A model generated the notes under the pieces. That model was not told the origin of the DNA. It did no database searches and saw only the letters and a list, made by a program, of their open reading frames with translations. A DNA stretch of 64,000 bases from NCBI GenBank assembly GCA_029953675.1, contig JAMWBK010000001.1, positions 1,178,001 to 1,242,000 on the forward strand, written 5' to 3'. The translations under genes were made by a program, and so were the position numbers. Positions 1 to 39,150 of the stretch are shown in pieces. The DNA comes from Rhodosorus marinus CCMP1338 (taxonomy: Eukaryota; Plantae; Rhodophyta). Every line of letters starts with the position of its first letter. Position 1 is the first letter of the stretch.

Positions 1-2535
1 CAACCTCAACCGTATGCCCTATCCGAGTGAAAAATTCGCTGAGGATGTACTTGAGGCAAGTGTGGCGCCTCGTACGGAGACCCCTCAACAGTCCGCAGGA
101 GCCCAGCAAGTGGTAGCCACAAGCGTCAATCCGACTCTCACATCCCTGACAGAAAGACGGCCGATTAGAGTGCCACGGAGCCTGTGGCAAACCGAGATAG
201 ATCCGTGCGGCAGAACGGAACTGGAAAGCATCGAGACGATGACTCAATGACGACGGTAGAGTGGTTAACCACAAGTGCGAGAGGTGGCCTCCCATGCCGC
301 GGAGACGAGCGGCAGTGGGAGGCGGCGTGAGAGGAGAATTGAGCATGACTGTGCGAGCGGCACTGTGTTGGCCCCAGGTGAGGCTATGTTGAATCACATC
401 AGTGCGGGAGCTCCACAATCGGCTCAAACCCGGGTAGTCTGCAACAGGTGACCCGGGGCTAGCCTCTCCGTCATCGGCAAAAACTCGGTCGAGGGGAGAA
501 TCCTCAATCTCTTCAGCTCGTCCCCATAACAGCTCCCTCCAGGAACGAAAGCGGCACCGATTTGCGTCCGGCACGGCGTTGCACCTCCTGAACGCGTGTT
601 GAATACCATCATAAATTGTCAAAAGCGGGGGCGGCAGGGTCCCTGGATCCTCGTTGGTCAAAGCTCGAGCCAAGAGGCAGGCACTTCGCATCTGGAAGGT
701 CACCAACGTTCGCAGCGCGGTAGCCCAGGAGGCAACCGCCGCTGGCGAGCATACCAGCCCACGGTCTGCGACGCCGAATCCCCCTAATCGCAACGGTAGA
801 GCGATCTGTGCACGAATCAAGTCCCTGTCGGGAGCAGCTTCAAGATCGAGGGGCTCATCCAAGAGCGTTCCCCAGTGTTGCAGGGTCATCTCGTCGGCTT
901 TAGCCGCGATCCACGAGCCCCAAGCTGGAGGCAGGCTGCGCAACCAGTAGTTGAGTCTGGGACCGGCACAAAAGCGGGAAAGCAAGCAGGCCGATTGCAG
1001 CATGCTGTCGGGTAGGTGCTCAATGGCGTCGGTGAGTTGCTTGTGCCGTGCCATAGTCGAAGAGTGGATGGCAGAGAGGCCAGCGACACGTCCCTCGGGG
1101 GGAGAAAGCGACATTTTTCTGTTTCCACAGTCAAACCGACGCGACGTGCAATCGCTTCGATCGCGGTCAGTCCCCTAGCCAGGGTGTCAGGGGTGCCCAG
1201 CAATGTTACGTCATCGTGGTACGCGCAGATTCGAAGATCCGAGACCTCAGTCGAAAGACGTAAAAGTACGAGCTGTAGGGCACAGGCATGAAGAAGAGGT
1301 CCGCAAGGGTCGCCTTTTTGGACGCCAGTATGTCCTTGAAAAACAGTGCCCTCCGTTGTCAAGTAGGGGAGGCTCTCCCCTCCGTAAATACCCGATAGAA
1401 ACGGCCACGCCTCCGGAAACACACGTCGGAGCACCTCTAGCGCATGCGTCCGCGACACGCTGTTGAATGCGTTCCGGAAATCAACCACCAAAACTCCCCA
1501 CTCCGGCCTACTGGCGCGTTCTAGCTCGATCCTATGGGTGATCAGTTCGCAACCCCCAGAAAATCCCACCCCTACTTGCAAGGGCGCCACAAAAGCTGTG
1601 ACGCGCTGGCGAAGGCGCTGGCATAGCCACCTCCCGGCTAACTTCCGTAGGCTCTCCACCATCCCGATCGGCAGAAGACGCGGGTGGGCCGGCTGGTGGT
1701 CAGGTTTCGTGAGCAAGCAAAGCTGTGCCTGCTGGAGATGTTCCCATGGCGCAGACGCACCCGATACGCCCTGGAACAACTTGTTAAGGATCCTCAGAAG
1801 CGCGCTCTGGCCAGGCTGGCTCAGGGCCTGCAATAGCTCTGTTCTTAGTCCGGAGGGTCCGGGACAGCGTCCCCGACGCGAGGTACGAAGTAAATCCTCC
1901 AGGTCAGACTCACTGAGCGTCAGATCGATGCGAAACCTGGCCAACTCCGGACGGTCTAAGAATACCTCGAATTCAGGGGACAAGTCCACGTCGGACTCAG
2001 GGAACAAAGACGACACCGTCTGGGCGAGACTATCATCGTAGAGGAGGACAGGCGCCTGGCCCTCCAAAACCCGCGCCGCTCGACTTAAATTGCCCACTGC
2101 TACCAATTTCTGTACTCGAGCCGGCACGGGCGACACTGTGCCATGCCGAGTCCGACGGGCGGATGGTGCTGACGACGCCAAATAGCTGCGCTGTAGTACT
2201 TCCAAGTCTCCCTTCCAGAACAGGGCCAGTCGGTCTCGTACTCGCCATCTGCGCTCCGATGTGTGAATGGTGGCCAGAATCAGGCGCGGCATGACCCCCA
2301 GAAAAACCCAAATGACTGTGTCCCGAATGTTACGAGCCAGGCTCGTGAAGATGAAATCGAGAATGGTTCCAGCTACTAGAAGGTCTCCACGAGGGAGGAT
2401 GACTGGGGGAATGCCCCCACGGAGGGGAAGCGAGCCTCCTTCCAAAGAAATCCACCGCCGGAGCCAACTCCGAAAACGCGTACGCCAAATGCCCCAGTCT
2501 CCGCCCTCCTTCAGGACATAAGACTGTAGATCCAT
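1..2535 (-). pseudogene. A1 ORF2 (RT, then CCHC/RLE region), frameshifted by an 82-bp deletion
   Basis: ORF 886..2535 (MDLQSYVLKEGG...AYHDDVTLLG). The sequence below ~1050 matches the C-terminal ORF 17389..19014 in another frame. Confidence 0.85.
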
Positions 2536-2566
2536 AGGCTGCGACCTCGCAGCCGTGCCTGGAGCG

Positions 2567-3699
2567 CTAATCGTGCTTCTCCCCCTTAGACCCGGGGGAG
2601 TCTGTCCTCGCTCTCTTACCTCCTATCCGCACCAAAGTCGTGAGCCGCCCACTCCGCGAGGCTCGCGGAACGGATCCCGCGGGCTTCAGCAAAGTAACCT
2701 GGGCGTCCTCCACCGCCATGCCCTCAGTCTGCTCCCCTGCCTCACCACTCTCGCTGGAAGTGGTGCTAGAAGCAGAGCCCTCTAAAATCCCCAACCGCTG
2801 CAGCTCTGTCTTGTAGCGCGAAGTTAGCACAAGTCGCCTCTCCAGATCGAAGAAGCTGGACACCGCCATGCGCAGGTGACGAGGGCCCGACCAGAACGCT
2901 CCAACAAGATCCTCTCAAGGCGCTGAATCCGTAGCCAATGGATCGCTGCCGCCTTCACGCTGCTCTCATGCTCAGAGAGCCCTGCAGTTTCTCCCGGAGA
3001 CAGGAAATTGCCCGAGAAACGGTCAAAATCCAAGTGCAAAACCACCTGCGGGTTGCAGCGCAGCCACCGGGCGCTCTCAGGCCACTGCTCGGTAGGCTTC
3101 GCCAGCAAAGCCTCCAGGTACTTGGCGGCGGTTGCGGAGACCAAAAACAGCACATCGCGGCCCTCATAGGTTGCGAAGAAGAAATCACCCCGGCTGCACC
3201 CTAACGATTCCGCAAAAGTGTCCCGGAAGTCTCGCATAGACGGAACCTGTCCTCGTGTAGTCTGGGGCCGGACATTTCGCACGCACAGAAATTGGAGAGT
3301 GGTCTCCACAGGTTCATCCTGAGGCTCGCGAGATGGTAGGAAACGGAGCATAGCCGCCGTACGTGTGGCAGTGGTGCCCTTCCGCAAGACTGAGGCGTAC
3401 GAAGCCCCCCCTTGCGGCCACCACGTGCCCCCGCAGTAGCCGGGAGCTGGTGGCCAGCAATCCCGATTCCAGCCCACCTAGCTTCTGGGTGAGCTGAGGG
3501 AGCACTCCACGATCACTCGCAGCCGTGATCAGGCAGGTGACAGCGGAGATAAGTGCACGCGCCTGGGTGCCAGAAGCGCCTTCCAAGTCAACCTCGGAAG
3601 AAAAGGTGCCGCAGCTACGCTGAGGCGAACACGGAGTCCCCCACCTGGCAGTGCCTCCTTGGGAGGAGGCTCCGTCGAGCACGGAGAGATCCCTACCAT
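2567..3699 (-). pseudogene. A1 ORF1, disrupted
   Basis: Pieces 3529..3930, 2824..3477 and 2567..2869 match the intact ORF1 at 37097..38506. The MVGISP start is at 3699. Confidence 0.8.
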
Positions 3700-3979
3700 C
3701 CTGAGGGAATGCGCAAAGGAAACGTTGCACCACCAATATGAAACCGCACCGAGAGAATAATCGACCAAACCCAACCCAAATAGGAAAGGCCCCGCAACAC
3801 ACCCACCCGGAAGACAGAAGTAGTTGCAAATGCAAACGACGCACCGCGGAAAATCGAGGGGAAGGCGTACCAGAGGAAGCGCTTCCCGTAAACGAACACG
3901 CTCGCGACCGAAAAAGAAGCAAAACCCCAATCCTCAGCCAAACCACAACGAGACACTTAAACCCCCAGTTCACTTTACC

Positions 3980-4445
3980 AAACCTTTACTATAGCCTGAG
4001 GCTAAGCAAGGCGTGATTACAATAGCCTTAGGCGCTACTCAAGCCGTGAAAAGGAATTAAGAACTAGGGAGGGAAGCGTGCAAACCCAGGCGCCGATGGC
4101 GCGACTCGGCATGCATGTTGCTAGAATATCGCCACAGGGCGGCATTCAAACGCCGTAAACGCGCCAAGTACCCAGTAGGATGCTCAGCGAAACATTTCCG
4201 CACCCACTCTAAATCCGACTTTTCCACATGACTAAAGCTTTCCACAATGAAAGGCTGGAACCGGTGGGAGTGACCTTCGGCGTAGGGCAGACTGGCCATG
4301 CTCTTGCCCAGGAGGCGACCGCCGCAGGCGAGCCGACGAGCCCCCGATCTGCGACACCGAATCCCCCCAAGCGCAACGGTAGAGGGAGCTGGGCACGAAT
4401 TAAGGCCCTGTCGGGAGCTGCTTCAAGATCGAGGGGTTCATCCTA
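3980..4445 (-). mobile_element. Family A2 3' fragments directly upstream (head-to-tail) of the A1 copy
   Basis: ORF 4057..4299 ends LGLHASLPSS*; degenerate 3'UTR and GGCTAT-AGTAAAG tail at ~3983-3996. Confidence 0.75.
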
Positions 4446-4639
4446 GCATAGCCTGAATGAGTTAAGATCACCTATATAAGTTGTGAGTTCGCCTCGCTTA
4501 TGCTTGGAAGCTAGGTGTGAAGGAATGAAGAAAAAATGGGTATATAGACGATTCGGCTCAAGTTTACTCTACTGTGCACGGGCCGACACGCTTCTCTGTA
4601 GGTCTGTAAGGACTTCTACTTTCAACAGAAGCGAAAACC

Positions 4640-4920: not shown

Positions 4921-5265
4921 AAGGCGAAAAATTCCGCTTACGTCTGTCACCTCAAGGTAGTTGCCGGATCACATTACCCAAGAGTGCCTAGTCTAGTCCA
5001 CTCTATTTTTTGAGTTCTCGCCGAATTAACAGCGTGCGCTGGTGCTGGTCAACGCACTGACCTATGTTTGAGGTGCGACGCAGAACGAGTTTTTATGCGG
5101 ACCTACTGAAAACACCAGCACAACCAATCGCCTCTATTTCTGCCACGCAATTGGAAAACAATCAAGACAGGTTTTCATGATCTTCCCATCTTATGGGGGA
5201 GGGGGGGTTGGTTCGGTGCATCCACACACAACCTGTCCTTTGACGGTATCTTGGAATTGGAGAAT

Positions 5266-6633
5266 CTAAGCAGGCAAGACGAGCATTTTTGTAAAATTTT
5301 CGATTAGCAAAGGAAGCGCTTGATATAAGAACGAGCGAAACTTTCGCCTTACCCCTTCTTCTCCAGCGGGGCCACACACCGATCCGAAACTCCCTATTTG
5401 GGCGTCAAAGATACAACGGCCGGGTTGGCGTGCCAATTCCACGTCAAATTGGCCTTCGTTGAGGCCCTCGGGTTGGCCGAGTTGCAAGCTTCTCCATTCT
5501 CCTGTCGGTGGCAGACTTGAGTTCAAGCAATATCCGCAAATAACGCTGCCGATGCGCCCTACGACTGCGTAGTCCAGAAGCGGCCCAAAATAGGAATTCG
5601 TTGCCGGCTGCCCTACTATCAATGGGCCAGAATTCGCATAAACCTCGGCACTGGCGAAAGAGATAAATTCTAACAGCTGTCGTGGTTGCTCGACGGCTCT
5701 CACTGAATACCTCAGGGGCACTGGATTCGGAGCAACGCGCTCGAGAGCAAAAGCGGCTATATTCAAAGTAGACAACTCTGGCACCAAAAACACCGCAATG
5801 CTGAAAGAGTCGGAGAATCCTACAGAAGCTGCCTGCCGACGGATCACCGTACGCGCTTCCGCAGGGATGCTCGACCCCGGCGATGGACTGGGTACTCCTT
5901 CGTAAACAGTAAGCTCGAGCGCCTCTGGTTGGAGATCCAAGGCGGCGGGTGAAAACACAACTTGAATTGTGCTGCTATCACGGTTGATACGGTTGATGCC
6001 GGCAAACTCTGGTTGGCCACCGATAAAAGAGCACGAACCCTCGAGCCCGCATGCCAAGAATTCAAGCCCATTCTCATCGTCGATAGAAGTGCATGAAATG
6101 AAATCTTGAGTGGGGAGACAGGTTATGCCCGCCATTCTTGTAGCAGGCCCGCCCAGTTTAGCAGTGCGCACTTTGCCGTCCTCCATTCGAACCTTCGCTT
6201 CAACCAACAGCGACGGAGCGAGAAATTGTTGACTGCAGCAGTCACGGTCTGTCCTGATATCGTCCAGGCATGCGTCTACTCTCACCGCGGTCGGCTCACT
6301 ATCTAGAAACTTCCTCTTACGAGTGAACCGAGCTTTACCGTTAGGAATGTCTCCCGCCCAAAGCCCGAGTTTGGCTCGTCTAATCCCAACTCCAGCACGC
6401 ACGATAAAAATGAACCTGATACACGTCTCTCCCATGTTCGGTCCCTGCGTCTTCACAACATCGCTATTGCTTACGATTCCCACCGTTTCACCTTCAACTT
6501 CCAGTGCCAAACAATAGCGAGAAAAGCCTAAGGATGAAACGAGCGGATTAAAAAAGCTTGCGCATGTGGCAACATCGGCAATCGCCAAGCCAAAGATGCC
6601 GGCAACCAGGATTACTACCAACCCGTACTTCAT
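5266..6633 (-). CDS. Secreted protein, paralog 1 (455 aa): signal peptide, Cys-rich N-domain, lamin-tail-like C-domain
   Basis: Uninterrupted ORF with a hydrophobic N-terminus (MKYGLVVILVAGIFGLAIA); two close paralogs in the window; TATA-like GGGTATATA about 105 nt upstream. Confidence 0.85.
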   Translation of the reverse strand: MKYGLVVILVAGIFGLAIADVATCASFFNPLVSSLGFSRYCLALEVEGETVGIVSNSDVVKTQGPNMGETCIRFIFIVRAGVGIRRAKLGLWAGDIPNGKARFTRKRKFLDSEPTAVRVDACLDDIRTDRDCCSQQFLAPSLLVEAKVRMEDGKVRTAKLGGPATRMAGITCLPTQDFISCTSIDDENGLEFLACGLEGSCSFIGGQPEFAGINRINRDSSTIQVVFSPAALDLQPEALELTVYEGVPSPSPGSSIPAEARTVIRRQAASVGFSDSFSIAVFLVPELSTLNIAAFALERVAPNPVPLRYSVRAVEQPRQLLEFISFASAEVYANSGPLIVGQPATNSYFGPLLDYAVVGRIGSVICGYCLNSSLPPTGEWRSLQLGQPEGLNEGQFDVELARQPGRCIFDAQIGSFGSVCGPAGEEGVRRKFRSFLYQALPLLIENFTKMLVLPA

Positions 6634-7289
6634 GAATAATATTTAAATTGCACCCCCAAAATCTAAGGATTGACCACCCATAGTTGCTCTCTCCCACGCC
6701 CCTTCCCTCCCCCCAACGCAGCATCTCAAGTGGTAGTTATATACCCTTCCGCGTATCTTCGTACTGAAGCCTCCACACAGCATCAAATCAATTGTAAAAC
6801 CATCATTGTGACAACCTGGTTTGTGTCTTGTCCAATGACATTGCAATCTGAGTAGCGCCAAACGCTGGATTGGCTAAACCACTGCTACGAACGATAGCAA
6901 GTACCATTCCATTCTTCAGTTGGGGGTCCCTCTAGTCTGTTTTTTTAAGTTTCGCATTGTTTCCCCTGCATCCAAAACCTGTTTTCGGAACAGCTTCCCC
7001 TTCACACCCCGTCCCCTGCCCTCCGTGGAGGACACCAATCTTCAGGAGAAAAAGCTCCTCCCAACGGCTTTTTCCTCATTTTGTTTAGATCGAATTTGTA
7101 CGTTTCGGGACTGGATAGGAAACAAACGAAAAAACTAGGACTGTGCCAATTGGGTCGTGTTTTTCGCTGCTTTCCTCTCTAAACCCCCCTGCTTTCGAGG
7201 GGCTTACCACTTCTTAGGTAACCATCGAAAAAGCCGACTGGTGGCAACCACGAAAAAAAACCGTTGGCGGATTGAAATGCGCTTAAAAA

Positions 7290-8099: not shown

Positions 8100-8700
8100 G
8101 CTTCAAGGATCGTATATATATGCCGTTCTATCTCTGAGATGCTTGGATTTAGGGAAAACGTTCATGCAGATGCGAAAATCCTAGTCCTAGCCAGCCTTGA
8201 TCCACAACACTCAGGTAGCTGACTAGCTACGAATCTGGCGACTACAATAAGGGTTTCCAGCAGCTGAAGGGCCCTTATGTCTGGGGTACATAGAGTGGCT
8301 TTAGACTAGTGGTATTGCCCTGTGGTAGCTGCCGAATAAAGGCTGCGGGCTTACGTTAGTCTGGGGAGCTGGACACTTCGACACAACATGGTCAGGGATG
8401 CACTGGCGACAGTGCTGAGACAATGGCGACTAGAAGTGACAGTCGAACCGACTGGACACTACCAAGACAGTCGGCTCCGGCCTGACACCCGAGCTCGACA
8501 CCCGCGAACAGGCAAGCTCTACGTGATCGCTGTGAAGGTGACCTCGCCATTGCAAAGAACACACCTACACAAAGCGTCTTGGGAGACCGGGTATGCGGCA
8601 CACAAAGCGGAAAAGTTTAAAGACTCCAAATACCGTGACAGTATCGGAGAACACAACGACGACATCTTCATCCGCTTCTGTCTGTAAACAGTTGGGCAGG
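8100..8700 (+). pseudogene. RLE-endonuclease region of a third CRE-like lineage (family C), degenerate
   Basis: Translates ...WTLRHNMVRDALATVLRQWRLEVTVEP...RPDT...YVIAVKVTSP...AEKFKDSKY...F, typical of the post-zinc-knuckle RHN and RPD...D...K motifs; upstream SLDPQHSGS*L. A homologous remnant lies at ~41780-41910. Confidence 0.7.
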
Positions 8701-11700
8701 TGGGAACACAGCCTCACCTGGGGTCAACACAGTGCCGCTCAGGCAATCTTGCTCAATTCTCCACTCACACCGCCTACCACCGCATTCAACATAGCCTTAC
8801 CTGGGGCCAACACAGTGCCGCTCACGCAATCTTGCTCAACTCTCCACTCACACGGCCTACCATCGCCGCTCACCTTCGTGGCATGGGAGGCCATCTCTCG
8901 CACCAGTGGTTAACGACTCTGCCTTCGTCGCCGGGTCACCGTCTCGATGCCTTCCAGTACCGCTCCGCCGCAAGGATCTACGTAGATTTGCCACAAGCTC
9001 CGTGGCACTCTAATCGGCCATCTTTCTGTCAGGGATGTGAGAGCCGGATTGACGCTTGTGGCTACCACTTCTTGGGTTCATGCGGACTGTTGCGAGGTCT
9101 CCGCACGAGGCTCCACACTCGTCTCAAGTACATCCTAAGCGAATGTTTAACTCGGGTAGGGCATACGGTTGAGATGGAATCGGAACTACGCAGATCGGTC
9201 TCGGACACGGCGCCGCCCCGCTGTATAGCAGATCTTCTTGTCTCAGACGCTGCCGCCCGACACTCAGCATATGTTGACCTCGCCATTACATGCCCTGTGG
9301 CGAGCGCCCACCTCACGGCTGCCGCCGGCCGCCGAGGGGCTGCCGCTTCGGCTCTTCGAAGAGTGAAGGAACGACGGTATGCTGAGAGCATGGCCAGTCT
9401 GCCCTACGCCGCGGGTCACTCCCACCGGTTCCACCCTTTTCATTGTGGAAAGCTTTGGTCACGTGGGGAAGTCGGGTTTGGAGTGGTTGCAGAAATGTTT
9501 TACTGAGCATCCTGTTGAATACTAGTTATTAGTTCATCTTCACGCCTTGCGTAGCGCTTCAGGCTATGCTAGTAGTCATTCAACATAGCCTCACCTGGGG
9601 CCAACACAGTGCCGCTCACACAGTCATGCTCAATTCTCCTCTCACGCCGCCTCCCACTGCCGCTCGTCTCCGCGGCATGGGAGGCCACCTCTCGCACTTG
9701 TGGTTAACCACTCTACCGTCGTCATTGAGTCATCGTCTCGATGCTTTCCAGTTCCGTTCTGCCGCACGGATCTATCTCGGTTTGCCACAGGCTCCGTGCT
9801 ACTCTAATCGGCCGTCTTTCTGTCAGGGATGTGAGAGCCGGATTGACGCTTGTGGCTACCACTTCCTGGGTTCCTGCGGACTGTTGCGAGGTCTCCGTAC
9901 GAGGCGTCACACTCGCCTCAAGTACATCCTCAGCGAATTTTTGACTCGGATAGGGCATACGGTTGAGGTTGAGTCGGAACTGCCCAGATCCATCTCGGAC
10001 TCTGCACCGCCCCGTTGTATAGCCGATCTCCTCGTCTCTGACGCTGCTGCCAGACGCTCAACATATGTGGACCTTGCGATTACCTGCCCCGTGGCCAGCG
10101 CCCACCTCACCGCAGCCGCGCGCCGCCGGGGGGCCGCGGCTTCAGCCCTTCGAAGAGTTAAGGAACGACGGTATGCTGAGAGCATGGCCAGTCTGCCTTG
10201 CGCTGAGGGTCGCTCTCACCGGTTCCAGCCATTCATTGTAGAAAGCTTTGGTCACGTGGATAAGTCGGGTTTAGAGTGGTTGCGGAAATGTTTTGCTGAG
10301 CATCCTACTGAATATTTGGCGCTCTTGAGGCGCTTAAGTGTCTCCCTTTGGCGATATTCCAGCGACATGCTTTCCGAGGCGCGCCATCGGCGCCTGGGGT
10401 TGCATGCTTCCCTCCCTAGTTATTAGTTCATCTTCACGCCTTGCGTAGCGCTTCAGGCTATGCTAGTAAAGTCGAGTAAAGTCCAGTAAAGTCGAGTCGA
10501 GTAAAGTCCAGTTGAATACTTGGAACTTTTGCGGCGCTTAAGTGCCTCTCTGTGGCGATATTCGAGTAGCATGCTTGCCGAGGCGTGCCATCGATGCCTG
10601 GGTTTGCACGCTTCCCTACCTAGTTCTTAGTTCCTTTTCACGGTTTGCGTAGCGCTGTAGGTTATGCTAATAAAGACAGTAAAGCCCCGGGTCATCGGTT
10701 GCCGATTACCCGAGTCTGAGCCGATTGTGGAGCTCGCGCACTGATGTGACTCAACATAGCCTCACCTGTGGCCAACACAGTGCCGCTCACGCAATCTTTC
10801 TCAACTCTCCACTCACACCGCCTACCGCCGCTCGCCTCCGCGGCTGCCGCCCGCCGCCGAGGAGCAGCTGCGGCGGCCCTTCGCCGCGTGAAGAGACAAC
10901 GGTATGCTGAGAGCATGGCCAGTCTGCCCTACACCGAGGGTCGCTCCCACCGGTTCCAGCCTTTTATTGTGGAGAGCTTTGGTCATGTGGATAAGTCGGG
11001 TTTAGAGTGGTCGCGGAAATGCTGAGCATCCTACTGAGTACTTGGCGCTTTTACGGCGTTTGAGTGCCTCCCTGTGGCGATGTTCTAGCAGCATGCTTGC
11101 CGAGTCGCGCCATCGGCGCCTGGGGTTGCACGCTTCCCGCCCTAGTTCTTAGCTGTTATGGGGACGAGCTGAAGCGATTGAGGATTGTCCCCTCGACCGA
11201 GTTCTTGCCGATGACGGAGAGGCTAGCCCCGGGTCACCTGTTGCAGACTACCCGGGTTTGAGCCGATTGTGGAGCTCCCGCACTGATGTGATTCAACATA
11301 GCCTCACCTGGGGCCAACACAGTGCCGCTCACACAGTCATGCTCAATTCTCCTCTCACGCCGCCTACCACTGCCGCTCGTCTCCGCGGCATGGGAGGCCA
11401 CCTCTCGCACTTGTGGTTAACCACTCTACCGTCGTCATTGAGTCATCGTCTCGATGCTTTCCAGTTCCGTTCTGCCGCACGGATCTATCTCGGTTTGCCA
11501 CAGGCTCCGTGGCACTCTAATCGGCCGTCTTTCTGTCAGGGATGTGAGAGCCGGATTGACGCTTGTGGCTACCACTTCCTGGGTTCCTGCGGACTGTTGC
11601 GAGGTCTCCGTACGAGGCGTCACACTCGCCTCAAGTACATCCTCAGCGAATTTTTGACTCGGATAGGGCATACGGTTGAGGTTGAGTCGGAACTGCCCAG

Positions 11701-12415
11701 ATAAATCTCGGACTCTGCACCGCCCCGTTGTATAGCCGATCTCCTCGTCTCTGACGCTGCTGCCAGACGCTCAACATATGTGGACCTTGCGATTACCTGC
11801 CCAGTGGCCAGCGCCCACCTCACCGCAGCCGCGCGCCGCCGGGGGGCCGCGGCTTCAGCCCTTCGAAGAGTTAAGGAACGACGGTATGCTGAGAGCATGG
11901 CCAGTCTGCCTTGCGCTGAGGGTCGCTCTCACCGGTTCCAGCCATTCATTGTGGAAAGCTTTGGTCACGTGGATAAGTCGGGTTTAGAGTGGTTGCGGAA
12001 ATGTTTTGCTGAGCATCCTACTGAATATTTGGCGCTCTTGAGGCGCTTAAGTGTCTCCCTTTGGCGATATTCCAGCGACATGCTTTCCGAGGCGCGCCAT
12101 CGGCGCCTGGGGTTGCATACTTCCCTCCCTAGTTATTAGTTCATCTTCAAGCCTTGCGTAGCGCTTCAGGCTATGCTAGTAAAGTCCAGTTCTTAGTTCC
12201 TTTTAACGCCTTGCGTAGCGCTTCAGGCTATGCTAGTATGCTAGTCCAGTTAAGCCCAGTAAAGCCAATAGGGAGCTCTTCAGTAAAGTGTACACGGTTA
12301 CCCACGCGCCGATGGCGCGCCTCGGCAAGCCGGTAGGGGGGGTTTGCACGCTGCCCTACCTAGTTCTTAGGCCCTTTTCACGCCTTGCGTAGCGCTTTAG
12401 GCTATGCTAATAAGT
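8700..12415 (+). mobile_element. Head-to-tail array of about 7 5'-truncated family A copies (approx. 8700-9575, 9576-10512, 10513-10690, 10690-11140, 11140-12190, 12190-12275, 12300-12415)
   Basis: ORFs 8700..9506, 9566..10426, 11258..11704 and 11780..12139 encode the CQGC...HFLGSC knuckle and RLE ending LGLHASLPSY/S. Most copies end in TTGCGTAGCGC...GGCTATGCTA plus tail, followed immediately by the next copy. Confidence 0.9.
10464..10512 (+). repeat. A1 3' tail: 10-nt AGTAAAGTC(C/G) units (4 full, plus partials)
   Basis: tagtaaagtc gagtaaagtc cagtaaagtc gagtc gagtaaagtc cagtt, directly after ggctatgc. Confidence 0.9.
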
Positions 12416-12534
12416 TGAAGGATCATTCACAAAAGGAGTCGGAGAGCCTGGAAGGGTTTTCTTCGACACATCCAGCCGCTAACTCAATCTTGCTCAACTC
12501 TTCACTCACACCGCCGACCACCGCCGTTCGCCTG

Positions 12535-15500
12535 GCAAGAGGGTTCTTCGGTGGAAGGCGCTTCTCTCTGCTGCCTTTCCCCCCGTTTTTTCGGGTTTTG
12601 TTGTTGGTAGCCGAGTCATTCATCTTTTGGTTGTTGGGTCGTGACGGGGATTTTCCTCCTGTGGAGTTGGGTGGTGTGTGTTTTCGCCGGGGGGGGGATT
12701 GGTGGTTAAAGTATCGTCACTAAATTCTCTCGTGATGGTAGGGGTTTCCCCGCGCCCTGCTCCGTCAAGAGCGGAGCTCCCTGGCAACGAGGTGTGCTTG
12801 GGGGTTGGGCACCGGGTGTGTCTAAGTTCGGGCCCCTTCTCTACGCAGGTGGAGCTGCAGGGCGCCGCTGGTATGGAGGTGTGAGCCCTCATGTCAGCCG
12901 TCACCAGCCTAATCACCGCCGCGGGGGATAAGGGCGTGCTGCCGCAGCTGACCCAACGCCGTGGTTTCCTGGAATCCAGTCGCCTGCCATAAAATCTGAC
13001 ACTGCGGCCACGCGGCCCCCAGGCAGTCAAAATCAAGGGGTCAGTCACTCTGCGCCTGTCTCCGAACAGGCGCGGGCTGCTGAGCCTGTAGTTGGTGGTC
13101 CCTCGACTGGCGCCTCTTGGGGGAGGGGTGCAACTATCTCTACTCCTTTGCACGTCCCCTCAACGGGAGCGGACTTTCCTGTGCAGGGTTAGCCCTCAGG
13201 TGGGGGACAGCTCCAGGCCAAGGCAGGGACACGTAGTGGCCCTAAGGGGGGCCCGTCGCACACCTCGGTTTTACGGAAGGGTACTACATCCGCCCGTACG
13301 GCGGATATGCTAAAGTTATTGCCCTCTCGCGAGCAGCAGGGCAGACCTGATGCGACTACTTTGCAATTCCTTTTGGTACGCAAGGTTCGGCCCCAGACTA
13401 CACCGGGCCAGGTCCCATCCACGCGTGATTTACGGAATACTTTCGCGGAGTCCTTGGGCTGTTGCCGAGACGTCTTCCTTTTTGCGAACTACGAGGGCCG
13501 GGATGTTCTCTTCGCGATCACTGCAACAGCGGCCACGTACCTGCAGGCTCTACTGGCCAAGCCTACCGAGCAATGGCCTGAGAGTGCCCCCTGGTTGCGC
13601 TCTCATCCCCAGGTCGTTCTCCACTTTGACTTTGACCGCTTCTCGGGCACCTTCCTGTCTCCCGGAGAAACAGCAGGACTCTCACAGCACGAGTCCAGAT
13701 CAGCGTGAGAGCCGCAGCCATCCATTGGCTACGCATTCACCGCATTGAGCGTATATTCTTGGAGCGTTTCGCGTCGGGGCCACCTGCGTACAGCCGTCTC
13801 TACCCTTTTCGACCAGGAGAGGCGCCTTGTGCTGAGCTCGAGTCACACGGCGGAGTTGCAGAGGTTTGGGGTATTAGAGGGCTCTGCTACCAGCACCACT
13901 TCCAGTGAGAGTGGTGAGGAAGGGGAGCAGAATCAGGGCATATCGGTGGAGAACGCCCCTATTACTTTGTTGAAGCCCGAGGGAGTTATCCCGCGAGCCT
14001 CGCGGAGTGGGCGGCTGACCATTCTAGTGAGGTTAGACGGAAAATGTGCGAGGACCGACTCCCCCGGGTCAAAGGGGGAGAAGCACGATTAGCTCCCCGG
14101 GTACGGCTGCGAGGTCGCAGCCAATGGATTTGCGGTCTTATGTCGTGAAGGAGGGCGGAGACTGGGGCATTCGGCGTACGCGTTTACGAAGTTGGCTCCG
14201 GCGTTGGATGTCTTTGGAATGAGGCTAGCTTTCCCTCCGTGGCAGAATTCCGCCTGTCGTCCTACCTCGCGGCGAGCTCTTAGTGGCTGAGACCATCCTG
14301 GACTTCATCTTCACGAGCCTGGCGAGTAACCTTCGGGACACCGTCATGGGGGAATTTCTGGGGGTCATGCCGCGCCTGATTCTGGCCCCAACTCACACGC
14401 CGGAGCGCAGATGGCGTGTCCGAGATCGGCTTGCCATGTTCCCTCCTGAAAGGGGAATTCGAGGTGTTGCAGGAAAGCTACTTGGCATCGTTGGAACCAT
14501 CCGTTCGTCGGACCCGGGCTGGAACCGTCTCGCCCTTGACGGCTCGAGTACAGAAATTGGTAGCGGTGGGCGACTTGAGTCGAGCGGCGAGAGTTCTGGA
14601 GGGCCAATTGCCTGTCCTCTCCTACGAAGAAAGTCTCGCCCAGACGGTGTCATCTTTGTTCCCCTCGTCCAACGTGGACTTGCTACCCGAATTCGAGTCA
14701 TTCTTGGACCGTCCGGAGTTGGCCCGGTTTCAAATCGACCTGAGTCTCAACGAGTCTGATCTGGAGGATTTGCTTCGTTACCTCGCGTCGTGGACGCTGT
14801 CCTGGACTGTCAGGGTTTCGAACCGTATTATTGCAGGTCTTGGGCAAGCCTGGCCGGAGCTCACTGCTCAAGATCCTGAACAAAATATTCCAGGGCACAT
14901 CGGGCGCATCCCCCCCATGGGAACATCTCCGAAGGGGACAACTTTGCTTGCTCACGAAGCCTGGCCATTAGCCGGCCCACCCGCGTCTCCGGCCGATCGG
15001 TATGGTTGAGAGCCTACGGAAGCCAGCTGGAATGTGGCTATGCCAGCGCCTTCGCCAGCGGGTCACAGCTTTTATGGTGCCCTTGCAAGTGGGGATGGGA
15101 TTTTCTGGGGGTTGCGAATTGATCACCCATAGGATCGAGCTGGAGCGTGCCTGTAGGCCGGACTGGGGAGTTTTGGTGGTTGATTATTTTCGAAAAGCAT
15201 TCGACAGCGTCTCACGGACGCATGTGTTGGAGATGATCCGACGGGTTTTTCCGGAGGCGTGGCCCTTCTCCTCTGGTTTTTACGGAAGGGGGAGCCTCCC
15301 TTACTGCACTAGGGAGGGCACTGCCTTCCAAGCACATACTGGAGTCCAACAAGGTGATCCTTGTGGGCCTCTAATTCATGCCTGTGCCTTGCAGCTCGTT
15401 CTCCTGCGCCTCGCGACTGAGGTGCCGGCTCTTCTTATCTACGCCTATCACGACGACGTGACCTTGCTAGGCGCCCCTGAAACCCTGGCTCGGGGGTTGA

Positions 15501-16727
15501 CCCAGATCGAAACGATTGCACCCGGAGTAGGTCCGACTTTGGAACCCGAAAAGTGTCGTTTGCTCGCTCCAAGTGAAGGTTCGATGGCCTCTCTGCCATC
15601 TAATCTACGAACCATTGCCGAACGTGAAGGACTGGAGCACCACGGCGTCGGTTTCGGAAGCAACAACTTCGTCCAAGCCTCTTGCGAACGAGTTTTGACT
15701 CGGCACAAGCAGCTCTCTGACGCCATTGAGCGCCTTCCAGACAGCATGCTGCAATCGGCCTGCTTACTTTCCCGCTTTTGTGCCGGTCCCCGACTCAACT
15801 ACTGGTTGCGTAGCCTACCACCCGACTGGGGTTCGTGGGTCGCCACCAAGGCCGACGAGATGACGCTGAACCACTGGGGAACGCTCTTGGATGAAGCTCT
15901 CGATCTTGAAGTTGCTCCCGATAGGGACTTAATTCGTGCCCAGCTCGCTCTACCATAGTGCTTAGGGGGATTTGGTGTCGCAGATCGGGAGCTCGTCTGC
16001 TCGCCTGCGGGGTCGCCTCGTGGGCAACCGCGCTCCGTACCTTGGTGACTTTCCGGATACAAAGTGCCTGAATTTTGAATCGAGCACTGACTAGGGTGGA
16101 CCCAGTGACCCTTTCGCCCCAGATTTTGACGATCTATGACAGTCTACAACAGGCGTTCCGGAAGTGCAACGCGCCTGCCGGACGAGAATCGATCCCGTTT
16201 TCTCTCCTGGCGGGAACTGACATGGTGACGAACTGAGGCGATTGAGGACTCACCCATTGACAGAGTTCTTGCCGATGAGGGAGAAGCTAGCCCCAGATCA
16301 CCTATTGTAGATTACTCAGGTCTGAGTCGACTGTGGAGCTCCCGCACTGATGTTATTCAACACAGCCTCACCTGGGGCCAACACAGTGCCGCTCACGCAA
16401 TTTTCCTCAACTCTGCCCTCACACCGCCTACCACCGCCGCTCGCCTTCGCGGCATGGGAGGCCATCTCTCGCACCTGTGGTTAACCACTCTGCCTTCATC
16501 GCCGGGTCACCGTCTCGATGCCTTCCAGTTCCGCTCCGTCGCAAGGATCTACTTAGGTTTGCCACAAGCCCCGTGGCACACTAATCGGCCGTCTTTCTGT
16601 CAGGGATGTGAGAGCCGGATAGGCGTTTGCGGCTACCACTTCTTGGGTTCATGCGGACTGTTGCCAGATCTCCGCACGAGGCGCCAGACTCGTCTCAAGT
16701 ACATCCTAAGCGAATGTTTAACTGGAC
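12535..16727 (+). mobile_element. Family A2 element, nearly full length, multiply frameshifted, 3' end broken off
   Basis: ORF1 remnants from ATG 12735 (MVGVSPRP...) to TAG 14092 (...GSKGEKHD). ORF2 from ATG 14124 (MDLRSYVVKEGGDWG). ORF 15002..15958 has QQGDP and YHDD. Ends within the RLE region at ...GAATGTTTAACT. Confidence 0.88.
14105..14122 (+). promoter_or_regulatory. Conserved inter-ORF hairpin GGCTGCGAGGTCGCAGCC, 1 nt before the ORF2 ATG
   Basis: Identical in A2 (14105-14122) and A1 (2537-2554 and 37067-37084, minus strand), within a 31-nt spacer whose flanks differ. Confidence 0.6.
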
Positions 16728-16898
16728 TTTACTAGCATAGCCTGAAGCGCTACGCAAGGCGTGAAGATGAACTAATAACTGGGAGGGAAGCGTGCAACCC
16801 CAGGCGCCGATGGCGCGCCTCGGAAAGCATGTGGCTGGAATATCGCCAAAGGGAGACACTTAAACGCCTCAAGAGCGCCAAATATTCAGTAGGATGCT
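16726..16898 (-). mobile_element. Short A1 3' fragment joined tail-first to the broken A2 copy
   Basis: Top strand reads GAATGTTTAACT|GGACTTTACTAGCATAGCCTGAAGCGC. Confidence 0.85.
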
Positions 16899-23325: not shown

Positions 23326-23522
23326 TTGTACCCCCCAAGCCGTTGTACCCCGAAGCCGCTGTACCCCGAAGCCGTTGTACCTCGAAGCCATTGTACCCCC
23401 GAAGCCGTTGTACCCCGAAGCCGTTGTACCCCGGAGCCGTTGTACCTCGAAGCCATTGTACCCCCGAAGCCGTTGTACCCCGATTCCGTTGTACCCCGAA
23501 GCCGTTGTACCCCCGAAAGCCG
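23326..23522. repeat. 16-17-nt minisatellite (TTGTACCCCGAAGCCG), 12 units
   Basis: Counted directly. The C-run varies from 4 to 6; a variant pair (ttgtacctcgaagcca + 5-C unit) recurs at units 4-5 and 8-9. Confidence 0.95.
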
Positions 23523-23542
23523 TTGGAGACTCCAATGGCGGT

Positions 23543-34793: not shown

Positions 34794-34947
34794 ACTTTAC
34801 TGGACTTTACTAGCATAGCCTGAAGCGCTACGCAAGGCGTGAAGATGAACTAATAACTAGGGAGGGAAGTATGCAACCCCAGGCGCCGATGGCGCGCCTC
34901 GGAAAGCATGTCGCTGGAATATCGCAAAAGGGAGACTTTACTAGCAT
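34794..34947 (-). mobile_element. Short A1 3' insertion plus a tail-only piece, flanked by 15-bp TSD AATGGTTTTAATTGG
   Basis: Direct repeats at 34779-34793 and 34948-34962. Confidence 0.8.
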
Positions 34948-34962
34948 AATGGTTTTAATTGG

Positions 34963-35295
34963 CATAGCCTAAAGCGCTACGCAAACCGTGAAAAGGAACT
35001 AAGAACTAGGTAGGGAGACGTGCAAACTCAGGCGCCGATGGCGCGCCTCGGCAAGCACGCTGCTCAAATATCGCCACAGAGAGACACTTAGATGCCGCAA
35101 AAGTTCCGGGTATTCAACAAGATGTTCAGTGAAACATCTCCGCAAGAACTCCAAACCCGCCTCCCCCACGTGACCAAAGCTTTCCACAATGAAAGGATGG
35201 AACCGGTGGGAGCGACCCTCAGCGCGAGGCGGACTGGCCATACTCTCAGCATACCGTCGTTCCTTCACTCGTCGAAGAGCCGAAGCGGCTGCCCC
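34963..35295 (-). mobile_element. A2-type 3' end fused to the long A1 copy
   Basis: ORF 34999..35268 ends LSLHVSLPSS*; junction via TCGG microhomology near 35296. Confidence 0.75.
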
Positions 35296-38200
35296 TCGGG
35301 AGCAGCTTCAAGATTTAGGGGCTCATCCAAGAGCGTTCCCCAGTGTTGCAGGGTCATCTCGTCGGCTTTAGCCGTGATCCACGAGCCCCAAGCTGGAGGC
35401 AGGCTGCGCAACCAGTAGTTGAGTCTGGGACCGGCACAAAAGCGGGAAAGCAAGCAGGCCGATTGAAGCATGCTGTCGGGTAGGTGCTCAATGGCGTCGG
35501 TGAGTTGCTTGTGCCGTGCCAAAACTCGCTCGCAGGATGCTTGGACAAAGTTGTCAGTCCCCAATCCGACGCCGTGGTGTTCGAACCCTTCACGTTCGCT
35601 GATTAGTCGCAGAGTGGGTGGCAGAGAGGCCAGCGACACGACCCTCGGGGGGAGAAAGCGACATTTTTCTGTTTCCACAGTCAAACCGACGCGACGTGCA
35701 ATCGCTTCGATCTCGGTCAGCCCCCTAGCCAGGGTCTCAGGGGTGCCCAGCAATGTTACGTCATCGTGGTACGCACAGATTCGAAGATCCGAGACCTCAG
35801 TCGAAAGACATAAAAGTACGAGCTGTAAGGCACAGGCATGAAGAAGAGGTCCGCAAGGGTCGCCTTGTTGGACGCCAGTATGTGCTTGAAAAACAGTGCC
35901 CTCCGTTGTCAAGTAGGGGAGGCTCTCCCCTCCGTAAATACCCGATAGAAACGGCCACGCCTCCGGAAACACTCGTCGGAGCACCTCTAGCGCATGCGTC
36001 CGCGACACGCTGTTGAATGCGTTCCGGAAGTCAACCACCAAGACTCCCCACTCCGGCCTACTGGCGCGTTCTAGCTCGATCCCATGGGTGATCAGTTCGC
36101 AATCCCCAGAGAATCCCACCCCTACTTGCAAGGGCGCCATAAAAGCTGTGACGCGCTGGCGAAGGCGCTGGCATAGCCACCTCCCGGCTAACTTCCGTAG
36201 GCTCTCCACCAACCCGATCGGCCGGAGACGCGGGTGGGCCGGCTCAAAGCTGTGCCTGCCGGAGATGTTCCCATGGCGCAGACGCACCCGATACGCCCTG
36301 GAACAACTTGTTAAGGATCCTCAGAAGCGCGCTCTGGCCAGGCTGGCTCAGGGCCTGCAATAGCTCTGTTCTTAGTCCGGAGGGTCCGGGACAGCGTCTC
36401 CGACGCGAGGTAGGAAGCAAATCCTCCAGGTCAGACTCACTGAGCGTCAGATCGATGCGAAACCTGGCCAACTCCGGACGGTCTAAGAATACCTCGAATT
36501 CAGGGGACAAGTCCACGTCGGACTCAGGGAACAAAGACGACACCGTCTGCGCGAGACTATCATCGTAGGGGAGGACAGGCGCCTGGCCCTCCAAAACCCG
36601 CGCCGCTCGACTTAAATCGCCCACTGCTACCAATTTCTGTACTCGAGCCGGCACGGGCGACACGGTGCCATGCCGAGTCCGACGGGCGGATGGTGCTGAC
36701 GACGCCAAATAGCTGCGCTGTAGTACTTCCAAGTCTCCCTTCAAGAACAGGGCCAGTCGGTCTCGTACTCGCCATCTGCGCTCCTCCGATGTGTGAATGG
36801 GGGCCAGAATCAGGCGCGGCATGACCCCCAGAAAAACCCAAATGACTGTGTCCCGAATGTTACGAGCCAGGCTCGTGAAGATGAAATCGAGAATGGTTCC
36901 AGCTACTAGAAGGTCACCACGAGGGAGGACGACTGGGGGAATGCCCCCACGGAGGGGAAGCGAGCCTCCTTCCAAAGAAATCCACCGCCAGAGCCAACTC
37001 CGGAAACCCGTACGCCAAATGCCCCAGTCTCCGCTCTCCTTCAGGACATAAGACTGTAGATCCATAGGCTGCGACCTCGCAGCCGTGCCTGGAGCGCTAA
37101 TCGTGCTTCTCCCCCTTAGACCCGGGGGAGTCGGTCCTCGCTCTCTTACCTCCTATCCGCACCAAAGTCGTGAGCCGCCCACTCCGCGAGGCTCGCGGAA
37201 CGGATCCCGCGGGCTTCAGCAAAGTAACCTGGGCGTCCTCCACCGCCATGCCCTCAGTCTGCTCCCCTGCCTCACCACTCTCGCTGGAAGTGGTGCTGGA
37301 AGCAGAGCCCTCCAAAATCCCCACCCGCTGCAGCTCTGTCTTGTTGCGCGAAGTCAGCACAAGGCGCCTCCCCAGATCGAAGAAGCTGGACACCGCCATG
37401 CGCAGGTGACGAGGGCCCGACCGGAACCGCTCCAACAAGATCCTCTCAAGGCGCTGAATCCGTAGCCAATGGATCGCTGCCGCCTTCACGCTGCTCTCAT
37501 GCTCAGAGAGCCCTGCCGTTTCTCCCGGAGAAAGGAAATTGCCCGAGAAACGGTCAAAATCGAAGTGCAAAACCACCTGCGGGTTGCAGCGCAGCCACCG
37601 GGCGCTCTCAGGCCACTGCTCGGTAGGCTTCGCCAGCAAGGCCTCCAGGTACTTGGCGGCGGTTGCGGAGACCAAAAACAGCACATCGCGGCCCTCATAG
37701 TTTGCGAAGAAGAAATCACCCCGGCTGCACCCAAACGATTCCGCAAAAGTGTCCCGGAAGTCTCGCATGGACGGAACCTGTCCTCGTGTAGTCTGGGGCC
37801 GGACATTTCGCACCCACAGAAATTGGAGAGTGGTCTCCACAGGTCCATCCTGAGGCTCGCGAGATGGTAGGAAACGGAGCATAGCCGCCGTACGTGTGGC
37901 AGTGGTGCCCTTCCGCAAGACTGATGCGTACGAAGCGCCCCCTTTGCGGCCACCACCTGCCCCCGCAGTAGCCGGGAGCTGGTGACCACCTGAGGGCTGG
38001 TCCAAGAGAGGGAAGTCCACAGCTGCAGTCTCCTCCACACCGGTTGCCGCACAGTCACCACCACCATTGCCTCGAGTCCCCGAGCGCTGAAGCGCCTTTT
38101 GGCCCGGCCTGCCGCTCCCCAACGTCGTACTGTCCCGCGCAGAAGCAACCGCCCTCGCCTGTCCCGGGACAGGTTCATGTTGATTGACCTGATGTTGACT

Positions 38201-39150
38201 GCCTTCAGCCAACGCTGCCACTCTGGGGCAATTCAAATTCTCGTCCGAATTTGAATTTGACCTGGCCAGCAATCCCGATTCCAGCCCACCTAGCTTCTGG
38301 GTGAGCTGAGGGAGCACTCCACGATCACTCGCAGCAGTGATCAGGCTGGTGACAGCGGAGATAAGTGCACGCGCCTGGGTGCCAGAAGCGCCTTCCAAGT
38401 CAACCTCGGAAGAAAACGTGCCGCAGCTGAGGCGAACACGGAGTCCCCCACCTGGCAGTGCCTCCTTGGGAGGAGGCTCCGTCGAGCGCGGAGATATCCC
38501 TACCATCCTGAGGGAATGCGCAAAGGAAACGTTGCACCACCAATATGAAACCGCACCGAGAGAATAATCGACCAAACCCAACCCAAATAGGAAAGGCCCC
38601 GCAACACACCCACCCGGAAGACAGAAGTAGTTGCAAATGCAAACGACGCCCCGCGGAAAACCGAGGGGAAGGCGTACCAGAGGAAGCGCTTCCCGTAAAC
38701 GAACACGCTCACGACCGAAAAAGAAACAAAACCCCAATCCTCGACAACAACTCCTCCCTTTACAGTGTTCAGTAACTCCACCTGCGTGGAGAAAGGGCCC
38801 GCACGAAGAGACACCCTATGTCCACCCTCAGTGGACACCTCCGCCCGCGGGATCTCCGGATCCTCAGGAGTGGAGCGCGGAGGAACCCCGGCCATCACGG
38901 AAGAGTATGTTGAACAGGAGTTTCACGAAGGAACCCAACCAAAATATCCCGCACAATCCAGCGCCGCAGACCGAAAACTCTGGCTCGAACACACCCAAAG
39001 AGGGAGAATCTCCGATAACCAACCACGAAACCCCCAAAAGCGGGGGAAAAGACAGCGAGAGGCTGCGCCTGCAACGAGGAACACCCTCGGACCGGAACAC
39101 GACTCCAATCGCAATCCGGAAACCAACTCAAACCCCCCTAATAACAACGT
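35296..39150 (-). mobile_element. Family A1 element with the longest 5' region; ORF2 frameshifted (~36240) and fused past the RT
   Basis: ORFs 36244..37065 and 35265..36287 (QQGDP, YHDD); intact ORF1; G/T-rich 5' region to ~39150, preceded by a degenerate tail CTATGGTTAGTAAAACC. Confidence 0.9.
37097..38506 (-). CDS. Family A1 ORF1, intact (469 aa from MVGISPRS)
   Basis: Open frame; start chosen from the MVG(I/V)SP motif shared with A2 and B; SYASVLRKG followed by an RRM-like pattern. Confidence 0.8.
   Translation of the reverse strand: MVGISPRSTEPPPKEALPGGGLRVRLSCGTFSSEVDLEGASGTQARALISAVTSLITAASDRGVLPQLTQKLGGLESGLLARSNSNSDENLNCPRVAALAEGSQHQVNQHEPVPGQARAVASARDSTTLGSGRPGQKALQRSGTRGNGGGDCAATGVEETAAVDFPLLDQPSGGHQLPATAGAGGGRKGGASYASVLRKGTTATRTAAMLRFLPSREPQDGPVETTLQFLWVRNVRPQTTRGQVPSMRDFRDTFAESFGCSRGDFFFANYEGRDVLFLVSATAAKYLEALLAKPTEQWPESARWLRCNPQVVLHFDFDRFSGNFLSPGETAGLSEHESSVKAAAIHWLRIQRLERILLERFRSGPRHLRMAVSSFFDLGRRLVLTSRNKTELQRVGILEGSASSTTSSESGEAGEQTEGMAVEDAQVTLLKPAGSVPRASRSGRLTTLVRIGGKRARTDSPGSKGEKHD

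Follow-up and report, generated by a model that had tools for sequence, protein, structure and literature searches.

A retrotransposon of the R2 group in Rhodosorus marinus that probably builds head-to-tail arrays by landing in its own older 3' ends

We describe here family A, a retrotransposon found in a 64-kb stretch of the genome of the red alga Rhodosorus marinus CCMP1338 (JAMWBK010000001.1, positions 1,178,001-1,242,000), which is the window to which all counts and coordinates below refer. At positions 8700-12415 of this window lies an array of family A pieces, which an earlier note on this DNA had explained as the work of a retrotransposon whose copies each deposit a landing pad, through telomere-like tails, and may extend or heal chromosome ends. 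The explanation that we consider probable is that an R2-like element lands in its own older 3' ends and carries an enzyme that hops between templates. This explanation is carried by the nested anatomy of the array, by the duplicated target sites around its insertions, by the concentration of these insertions at resident 3' ends and by the fragments found at 5' junctions.

Family A makes up about 30% of the repeat-rich window, as judged by self-comparison, and has copies on both strands. The young copies of one of its subfamilies, alpha, are mutually 96-100% identical, while older copies include those of a beta type. Copies were mapped on a composite 4476-nt reference, which serves for coordinates only. 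Mapped in this way, the array has the following parts, where O1, O2 and O3 denote older copies, and ORF and UTR stand for open reading frame and untranslated region:

8705..8783, + strand: isolated patch of 79 nt from the interior of ORF2 (reference 3593-3671), at the 5' edge of the array
8784..9522, + strand: left part of O1 (reference 3589-4326), encoding the CCHC/endonuclease part of ORF2
9523..9574, + strand: young alpha 3'-end fragment, the last ~50 nt with a short tail (gtagtca), standing at the following copy's 5' junction
9575..10510, + strand: young alpha copy of 891 nt (reference 3586-4476, 98% identity) with its tail
10511..10686, + strand: right part of O1, with beta-type 3' UTR, terminal hairpin and tail ATAAAGACAGTAAAGCC (10670-10686)
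10683..11152, + strand: left part of O2 (reference 3523-3687 fused to 4123-4437, an internal deletion)
11153..12187, + strand: young alpha copy (reference ~3451-4476, 98.7% identity) with tail GTAAAGTCC (12179-12187), in the 3' UTR of O2
12188..12269, + strand: right part of O2, with hairpin, 3' end at 12235 and tail region 12236-12269
12270..12413, + strand: O3, with 31 unassigned nt, an inverted segment, the 3'-terminal 70 nt of the element (12340-12409) and an ATAA tail

Positions 8705-12413 (+) are therefore filled by 5'-truncated pieces in the same orientation, as the earlier note had seen, but these are not the roughly seven serial copies that it counted. The array is nested: the three older 5'-truncated copies stand head to tail and are followed by a long copy, c2, and two young alpha insertions struck later, in the 3' UTRs of O1 and O2. 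The real copies number five, accompanied by two or three small fragments. The insert in O1 (9523-10510) is flanked by a 9-bp target site duplication (TSD), GTTGAATAC, at 9514-9522 and 10511-10519, and the insert in O2 (11153-12187) by another of 9 bp, AGTTCTTAG, at 11144-11152 and 12188-12196. When the flanks of each insert are rejoined, O1 and O2 become collinear with other copies, gap-free. As a consequence, the pieces at 10513-10687 and 12188-12238 must be regarded as the split 3' portions of O1 and O2, and not as copies. Within the single TSD pair in O1 lie both the 52-nt fragment (9523-9574), with a match of 53 nt at 100% identity to 10416-10468, and the 891-nt alpha copy, whose tail consists of 45 nt of GTAAAGTCSA units (10466-10510).

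The true junctions between a tail and a following 5' end are those at about 9575 (fragment and 891-nt copy), 10685 (O1 tail and O2), 12270 (O2 tail and O3) and 12412 (O3 tail and c2), with overlaps of 2-5 nt; for instance, the 5' end of O2 shares AGCC with the tail of O1. By contrast, two further junctions that had been proposed, 10512 and 12190, are the edges between tail and TSD of the insertions into 3' UTRs, and not into tails. The tail region of O2 also holds a re-copied tatgctagt fragment (12237-12252). At the 5' edge of O3 there is an in-place inverted, near-palindromic segment of 28-30 nt (12301-12330), which resembles the products of twin priming or snap-back.

An array of this kind might also arise at the DNA level, if an ancestral dimer underwent unequal crossing-over or segmental duplication. 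In fact, Tandem Repeats Finder (TRF) reports two-copy repeats of 83 bp and 57 bp, and elsewhere in the window a segment of 464 bp with an A 3' end in it is present twice (98.7% identity). However, the units of the array differ in 5' truncation, subfamily (80-100% identity), tail and internal deletions, and follow no period. The TRF repeats (8705-8866 and 12131-12238) were rejected as tandem duplications, since the 83-bp repeat is read as the patch at the 5' junction of O1 and the 57-bp repeat is the TSD-flanked insert. Moreover, the junctions of the array are mutually different, and the array is thus not a segmental duplication, for which the earlier note had taken identical junctions as the sign. 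Amplification at the DNA level is, consequently, very improbable.

The 3' end of family A is central to the explanation that we favour, namely insertion into resident 3' ends with template switching. Complete 3' ends read ...GCGTAGCGCTTCAGGCTATGCTA followed by a decamer-type tail, and the terminus TTGCGTAGCGCTTCAGGCTATGCTA is conserved in all copies, including a 71%-diverged copy and a foreign contig (see below). The decamer is subfamily-specific, (GTAAAGTCCA)n or (ATAAAGCCYA)n: young alpha tails are made of GTAAAGTCC(A) units, and beta-type or older copies carry ATAAAGCC or ACAAAGCC units, with tail lengths of 4-75 nt. As the sequence of the tail follows the subfamily, the tail is copied from the RNA and not taken from the target. 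GCGTAGC and GCTATGC are able to pair as a 7-bp terminal hairpin, and conservation, one compensatory pair and five wobble changes make such a hairpin plausible without proving it. Away from A 3' ends, the window contains no free-standing decamer arrays, and decamer-like matches there are at background level (65 found versus 49 expected, both strands).

The insertions outside the array follow the same pattern. The features that bear on them are:

1..3982, - strand: long alpha copy c1, cut at the window edge, used as a comparator
4012-3987, - strand: 26-nt A 3'-end fragment with tail, to 3983, preceding c1
4446-4022, - strand: older A copy, preceding the fragment upstream of c1
4449-4437, - strand: 13-nt A 3'-end fragment without tail, preceding the older copy 4446-4022
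12414..16723, + strand: long copy c2, of a divergent subfamily (79-83% identity to the reference), starting directly after the tail of O3
29155 to 24414, - strand: long copy c3, of the sister family B
34794..34947, - strand: young alpha insert (14-nt 3'-end fragment, 126-nt copy and tail), inside the tail of c4
34962..39150, - strand: long copy c4, with ORF1 (38737-37097) and an ORF2 with reverse transcriptase, used as a comparator

The starts of all four long copies adjoin an A 3' end (c1 at 3982, c2 at ~12414, c3 at 29155 and c4 at ~39150), in line with the remark in the earlier note that the long A1 copies start right after an A tail. For instance, c4 was inserted after an old degenerate A 3' end, with a probable 8-bp TSD, TAAAACCA, within the old degenerate tail, and its own tail received the young insert at 34794-34947, which is flanked by a 15-bp TSD, CCAATTAAAACCATT (34779-34793 and 34948-34962). 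Another TSD, AATCAAATA, flanks an alpha copy in unique DNA, and the 12-bp TSD TTCAGGCTATGT lies inside the last 12 nt of this same alpha copy and flanks c3, so that a full copy of family B sits inside the terminal hairpin of an alpha copy. Together with GTTGAATAC and AGTTCTTAG, there are then five insertions in the window with TSDs of 9-15 bp, where a match of 9 bp or more is observed in 0.3% of random window pairs.

Every resolvable insertion has a TSD of 8-15 bp, and the insertions are, consequently, ascribed to staggered nicks in internal duplex DNA, that is, to ordinary target-primed reverse transcription (TPRT), and not to addition to free ends. This bears directly on the building or healing of telomeres, in which A would be added to free ends or would target telomere repeats, and the array would be a former or current chromosome end. 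All that speaks for it in the window is the head-to-tail geometry and the repeat-type tail, to which the existence of telomere-repeat-targeting elements with a restriction-like endonuclease (RLE) may be added (MoTeR; PMC7367193). By contrast, all insertions that can be resolved have TSDs, A copies stand in either orientation within 64 kb, ORFs are found on both sides, with a host-like Hint-domain ORF in the same window and an snRNA on the flanks, and tails are both short (4-75 nt) and specific to subfamilies. In addition, the 64-kb window contains neither canonical or other telomere-type repeats nor decamer arrays away from A ends. The telomere-like role that the earlier note had proposed is thus not supported in this window, and we consider it extremely improbable.

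The target preference itself is marked. The target can be read for about 12 events, and about 10 of them fall in a tail or no further than ~160 nt from an A 3' end, in sense orientation; this zone represents 2.4% of strand-specific positions (binomial P ~4e-15); with TSD-verified events only, 4 of 6 fall in it (P ~5e-6), these P values being rough, as the events may not be independent. The earlier note had made its idea depend on an enrichment of A inserts at tail-like sites, and such an enrichment is indeed present. Its picture of tails as landing pads stands as far as enrichment and orientation are concerned, but not for the two young copies in O1 and O2, which struck the 3' UTR 40-155 nt upstream of the tail. 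Self-targeting is thus supported: family A lands preferentially at or near resident 3' ends, in the same orientation. The TSDs of the A family start with AGTT, GTTG, AATT, AATC or TAAA, that is, in the phase of the tail unit after ...GTCC, and these starts would fit pairing of the nicked strand with the RNA tail.

Outside the window, the only close relative found is a 1468-nt contig (L002), which belongs to a JGI data set and is 76% identical at the nucleotide level. At its start there is an A 3' end with the tail CAATAAACCAAAC, and the copy that comes next is 5'-truncated and internally deleted. The data set is one that we take to be a transcriptome.

The 5' junctions provide the second line of evidence. 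Pieces of the extreme 3' end of family A stand at several of them (13 nt at 4449-4437, 14 nt at 34947-34936, 26 nt at 4012-3987 and 52 nt at 9523-9574, apart from the re-copied tatgctagt at 12237-12252), and at the end of the window a small nuclear RNA (snRNA) takes a similar place:

63641-63669, + strand: A-like hairpin and tail, upstream of U5
63670-63783, + strand: complete U5 snRNA (Rfam 55 bits, model positions 1-117)
63790 onward, to 64000, + strand: 5'-truncated A copy, starting at reference 3883

The stretch 63641-64000 is read as a chimera of an snRNA and a long interspersed nuclear element (LINE), which looks like the product of serial template switching and may not be a functional U5 gene. 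Upstream of this block there are two units of CCTCGGTTTCGGTTT, (CCTCGGTTTCGGTTT)x2, and a 48-nt patch of ORF2. Chimeras between subfamilies are also observed: c4 combines a 5' part of alpha type (96-98% identity) with a 3' end of beta type (82% identity), the fusion lying at reference 3155|4137, and skips the endonuclease region. The 3'-end fragments, the U5 fusion, the subfamily chimeras and the small inversion at 5' junctions point to template jumping, and the parallel with R2 that the earlier note drew is a good one.

These observations are also what separates our explanation from one of purely serial landing pads, in which each junction would be an independent insertion into the previous tail, with no template jumping. 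Two TSD-flanked insertions in tails (the insert in the tail of c4, and the long copy c4 itself) agree with such a scheme, as do the tails between O1 and O2, O2 and O3, and O3 and c2. However, the 13- and 14-nt fragments would each need a separate insertion followed by a strike exactly at the last base, and the 13-nt fragment at 4449-4437 lacks any tail. In addition, U5 snRNA is unable to insert by itself, the 52-nt fragment and the 891-nt copy share a single TSD pair, and the two young copies of the array are in 3' UTRs, not in tails. Purely serial insertion is, therefore, an unlikely account of the array.

It could also be proposed that arrays are copied as such, if read-through transcripts of an array were reverse-transcribed from the last 3' end, so that junctions and fragments would be inherited. 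In favor of this possibility, O1 and alpha unit 2, although diverged from each other, have the start CATTCAACATAGCC in common (at 8784 and 9575), independent copies begin within 22 nt of one another in a cluster at reference 3586-3607 (4 of 16, P ~0.02), and the related transcript contig L002 contains a junction, which implies that arrays are transcribed. On the other hand, no two junctions in the window are identical, save for the 464-bp duplicate, the tails and fragment lengths differ each time, and both the U5 fusion and the alpha/beta chimera would be left without explanation. Copying of whole arrays thus appears quite unlikely.

The clustering of 5' ends has a counterpart in a stretch from the interior of ORF2 (reference ~3590-3690) that is found alone, with ~50-80 nt, three times in the window: at 8705-8783, at 12466-12536 (in the 5' region of c2) and at 63567-63614. 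The cluster and the isolated patches are hints of a discrete short RNA or of a preferred acceptor or switch site. A self-cleaving ribozyme behind this hot spot was considered and rejected, as Rfam shows no ribozyme anywhere in the window with E values up to 5. Around reference 3586-3720 the fold is better than that of shuffled sequence (z = -3.2), with a hairpin 3' of the hot spot that does not explain it alone.

Several points weigh against the combination of self-targeting and template switching that we prefer. The 3' UTR sites of the two young inserts resemble the tail over no more than 3-4 nt; pairing with the tail is, therefore, insufficient by itself, and an extra recognition of A's 3' region, through protein-DNA or RNA-DNA contacts, has to be assumed and is likely. 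The target preference is drawn from one 64-kb window and one short related contig, and a transposon-rich island that tolerates insertions could inflate the enrichment. The AATCAAATA site is present twice via the 464-bp duplication, so rearrangement also shapes the region. As for the hairpin, the covariation check found only one compensatory pair, and the 84-nt 3' end at 10391-10474 folds no more stably than shuffled sequence. Finally, the old junctions (10685, 12270 and 12412) fit serial insertion into tails and a single multi-template event alike.

With these points in mind, the following model may be proposed. New copies enter internal chromosomal sites by TPRT and leave the 8-15 bp TSDs described above. 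The bottom strand would be nicked where it is able to pair with the RNA tail, as suggested by TSDs that start with AGT(T/A) or AAT(T/C). If the nick site is chosen by tail pairing, older A tails and the adjoining 3' UTR would be the best targets, in a fixed orientation, and this would account for the enrichment observed. At the far end, the enzyme would often switch to the 3' end of another A RNA, producing fragments of 13-52 nt or whole extra copies, and in one case it would have jumped to U5 snRNA. Jumps between the RNAs of different subfamilies, or within one RNA, would produce chimeras and internal deletions. Together, self-targeted TPRT and template switching would build head-to-tail, 3'-biased arrays. 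A more far-reaching version, in which the ORF2 protein specifically homes to the DNA form of its own hairpin and tail, and the arrays, growing ever larger in one orientation, serve or mark a structural domain of the chromosome (centromere-like as in Zepp, subtelomeric or occasionally end-healing), seems to us unlikely.

The proteins of family A agree with this picture, and its description as a retrotransposon in the earlier note is supported. ORF1, of ~546 aa in long copies, has no match in Pfam. The reverse transcriptase of ORF2 is recognized by Pfam RVT_1 in four copies (E 8e-16 to 3e-8), and the closest solved proteins by sequence in the PDB are R2 proteins (E 4e-9). Downstream of this domain there is a CCHC motif, CQGCESRVDACGYHLLGSC (CX2CX9HX4C), followed by RH, D, D and K positions, and when seven distant homologues that share this layout are aligned with it, the columns C, C, H, C, H, D and K do not vary. 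The C-terminal 229 aa were modelled with AlphaFold (pLDDT 67, pTM 0.63); R2 proteins take the first seven places among the PDB matches of the model (E 8e-6 to 2e-3, probability 1.00, TM ~0.5), and the next matches are other PD-(D/E)xK nucleases. With moderate confidence, then, the model and the motifs place a CCHC motif and a PD-(D/E)xK restriction-like endonuclease at the C-terminus. No Exo_endo_phos match, as expected for an apurinic/apyrimidinic endonuclease (APE), was found in ORF1, in the N-terminus of ORF2 or in ORFs bearing a reverse transcriptase (E 0.01 or better), and no N-terminal zinc-finger or Myb motif was recognized in family A. The presence of the reverse transcriptase and of the C-terminal CCHC/PD-(D/E)xK region, together with the lack of APE, makes family A a retrotransposon without long terminal repeats (non-LTR), of the RLE type. 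It belongs to the R2 group, taken here in the broad sense that covers the named clades CRE, R2, R4, NeSL and HERO.

In a set of 1.84 billion representative proteins, an identity of 71-86% to the proteins of family A is reached only by five short fragments, from close relatives, and the rest are 45% identical or less. No further copies were obtained with an exact-pattern scan of metagenome contigs for the 3' hairpin, with a protein-seeded scan for copies outside the window or with exact-protein look-ups of two window ORFs. Family A thus adds a deeply divergent, previously uncatalogued lineage to the RLE type. The sole homologue of the C-terminal region at E below 1e-5 is a protein (P0001, 30% identity) on an ENA metagenome scaffold (L001, positions 1-3547), where a 5'-truncated RLE element is repeated perfectly, in tandem units of 1661 bp that include the homologue; the tandem could be a real array or an assembly loop.

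Other features of the window may be described more briefly. Its GC content is ~52%, it contains a U5 snRNA and a Hint-domain ORF, and it is eukaryotic in character; no tRNAs were found in it. The sister family B has the same ORF layout as family A, with 37-40% protein identity, and is found as follows:

24414-29155, - strand; also 23548-23833, 61614-61899 and 29773-30093 (+): copies of family B

The 3' end of family B reads ...GATTAAACCATTCAT, and, in a parallel to the TSD starts of family A, the ...CCATTCAT end is followed by flanks starting with TCA. We considered family B as an element that targets family A and rejected this, as its other copies lie in unrelated flanks starting with TCA; the insertion of c3 in the loop of the A hairpin (TTCA) looks like an effect of microhomology. 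Next to a family B 3' end there is a 16-bp tandem repeat (GTTGTACCCCGAAGCC), with ~12 copies at 23325-23525.

The 464-bp duplicate (17363-16900 and 24413-23950) holds an A 3' end, of which the final 13 nt are included, together with the tail and 441 bp of flanking DNA. The partner upstream is not the same for both copies, being an alpha copy of 2.3 kb in one case and c3 of family B in the other. It could derive from segmental duplication, from transduction or from the repeated use of one site. The 3' end of c2 is missing, and an antisense alpha copy (16733-16898) is found at that place. In the array, an ATG in the terminal hairpin of the 52-nt fragment (ggctATGcta) opens a 286-aa frame (9566-10426, +) through the truncated endonuclease region of the next copy, which is probably fortuitous.

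A repeat, 'G', is present in three copies of 72-81% identity (5079-6884, +; 32996-34768, -; 43621-45325, +). Each one follows an A- or B-like 3' end at a distance of ~20 bp and encodes an ORF of 455-508 aa, antisense to the neighbouring element and with no Pfam match; 'G' could represent a gene family or a further mobile element. A single ORF of clearly host-like character was seen (59870-61018, +), and it carries a C-terminal Hint module (hedgehog/intein type, E 1e-25) and a Thr/Pro-rich region of 30-nt repeats (60303-60439).

When compared with known systems, family A looks like R2 in its biochemistry and belongs to the RLE group (R2, R4/Dong, NeSL/Utopia, CRE and HERO), with which it shares the reverse transcriptase, the C-terminal CCHC motif, the PD-(D/E)xK nuclease and the lack of APE, as well as the need for a specific 3' end and the preference for repeated targets. 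Most elements of this group target repeats, such as rRNA genes and microsatellites (Kojima and Jurka, PMC4640811). Family A, by contrast, prefers its own 3' region and tail to a host multicopy gene or a free-standing microsatellite, and it has a separate ORF1 and no recognized N-terminal zinc finger or Myb motif. It also differs from LINEs that target microsatellites (Dong, Togen and some HERO elements), as free-standing arrays of its tail repeat are absent from this one window. The template jumps to 3' UTR RNAs and snRNAs, the snap-backs and the head-to-tail products that may be read from its footprints resemble those of R2, for which jumps from finished cDNA to additional 3' UTR RNAs, fusions with U6, snap-backs and repeats in head-to-tail order have been described (PMC11371274), and which in vivo jumps to U12 snRNA and tRNA (PMC3414825). 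As R2-like enzymes are now used for targeted insertion, the way in which such elements choose their targets is also of practical interest.

With regard to its 3' end, family A resembles LINEs of the stringent type with repeat tails, such as UnaL2, with (TGTAA)n, and CR1/L2, with octamer tails. Like these, it combines a terminal stem-loop with a short tandem tail that is copied from RNA, varies in number of units and is able to pair with the nicked target. UnaL2 and CR1/L2 are APE elements for which, to our knowledge, no self-nesting has been reported, and the 10-nt tail unit of family A is, as far as we know, unusually long.

Family A shares head-to-tail arrays with MoTeR, Cnl1, TRAS-SART and HeT-A/TART. 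HeT-A and TART add to free ends and are not known to leave TSDs, unlike family A, with its five TSDs of 9-15 bp in the window. More generally, telomeric elements lie in telomere repeats or replace them, while family A is internal, has TSDs and lacks telomere repeats nearby. MoTeR likewise has an RLE domain, but carries telomere-like repeats at its terminus and targets telomere repeats (PMC7367193). No new telomere question is opened by family A.

In its targeting, the closest counterpart of family A is Zepp, an element that we take to carry an APE and a poly(A) tail. The likeness is that new family A copies target resident copies and form 3'-biased, same-orientation arrays (~10 of 12 events; 4 of 6 if TSD-verified); the difference is that family A is of the RLE type, with a hairpin and a decamer tail, and not an L1-clade element with APE and poly(A). 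Zepp, like the Zepp-like elements, is an L1-clade LINE of green algae; its existing copies receive nested insertions, and 3' ends thereby accumulate in arrays (PMC8226300). Its clusters mark putative centromeres; for family A, a centromere-like role belongs to the unlikely version given above. Self-nesting has so far been best described for the L1-type Zepp, and in family A it is joined with in-genome footprints of serial template jumping in the style of R2, a combination that should be useful for annotating genomes of this kind and for understanding how targets are chosen through 3'-end recognition and tail pairing.

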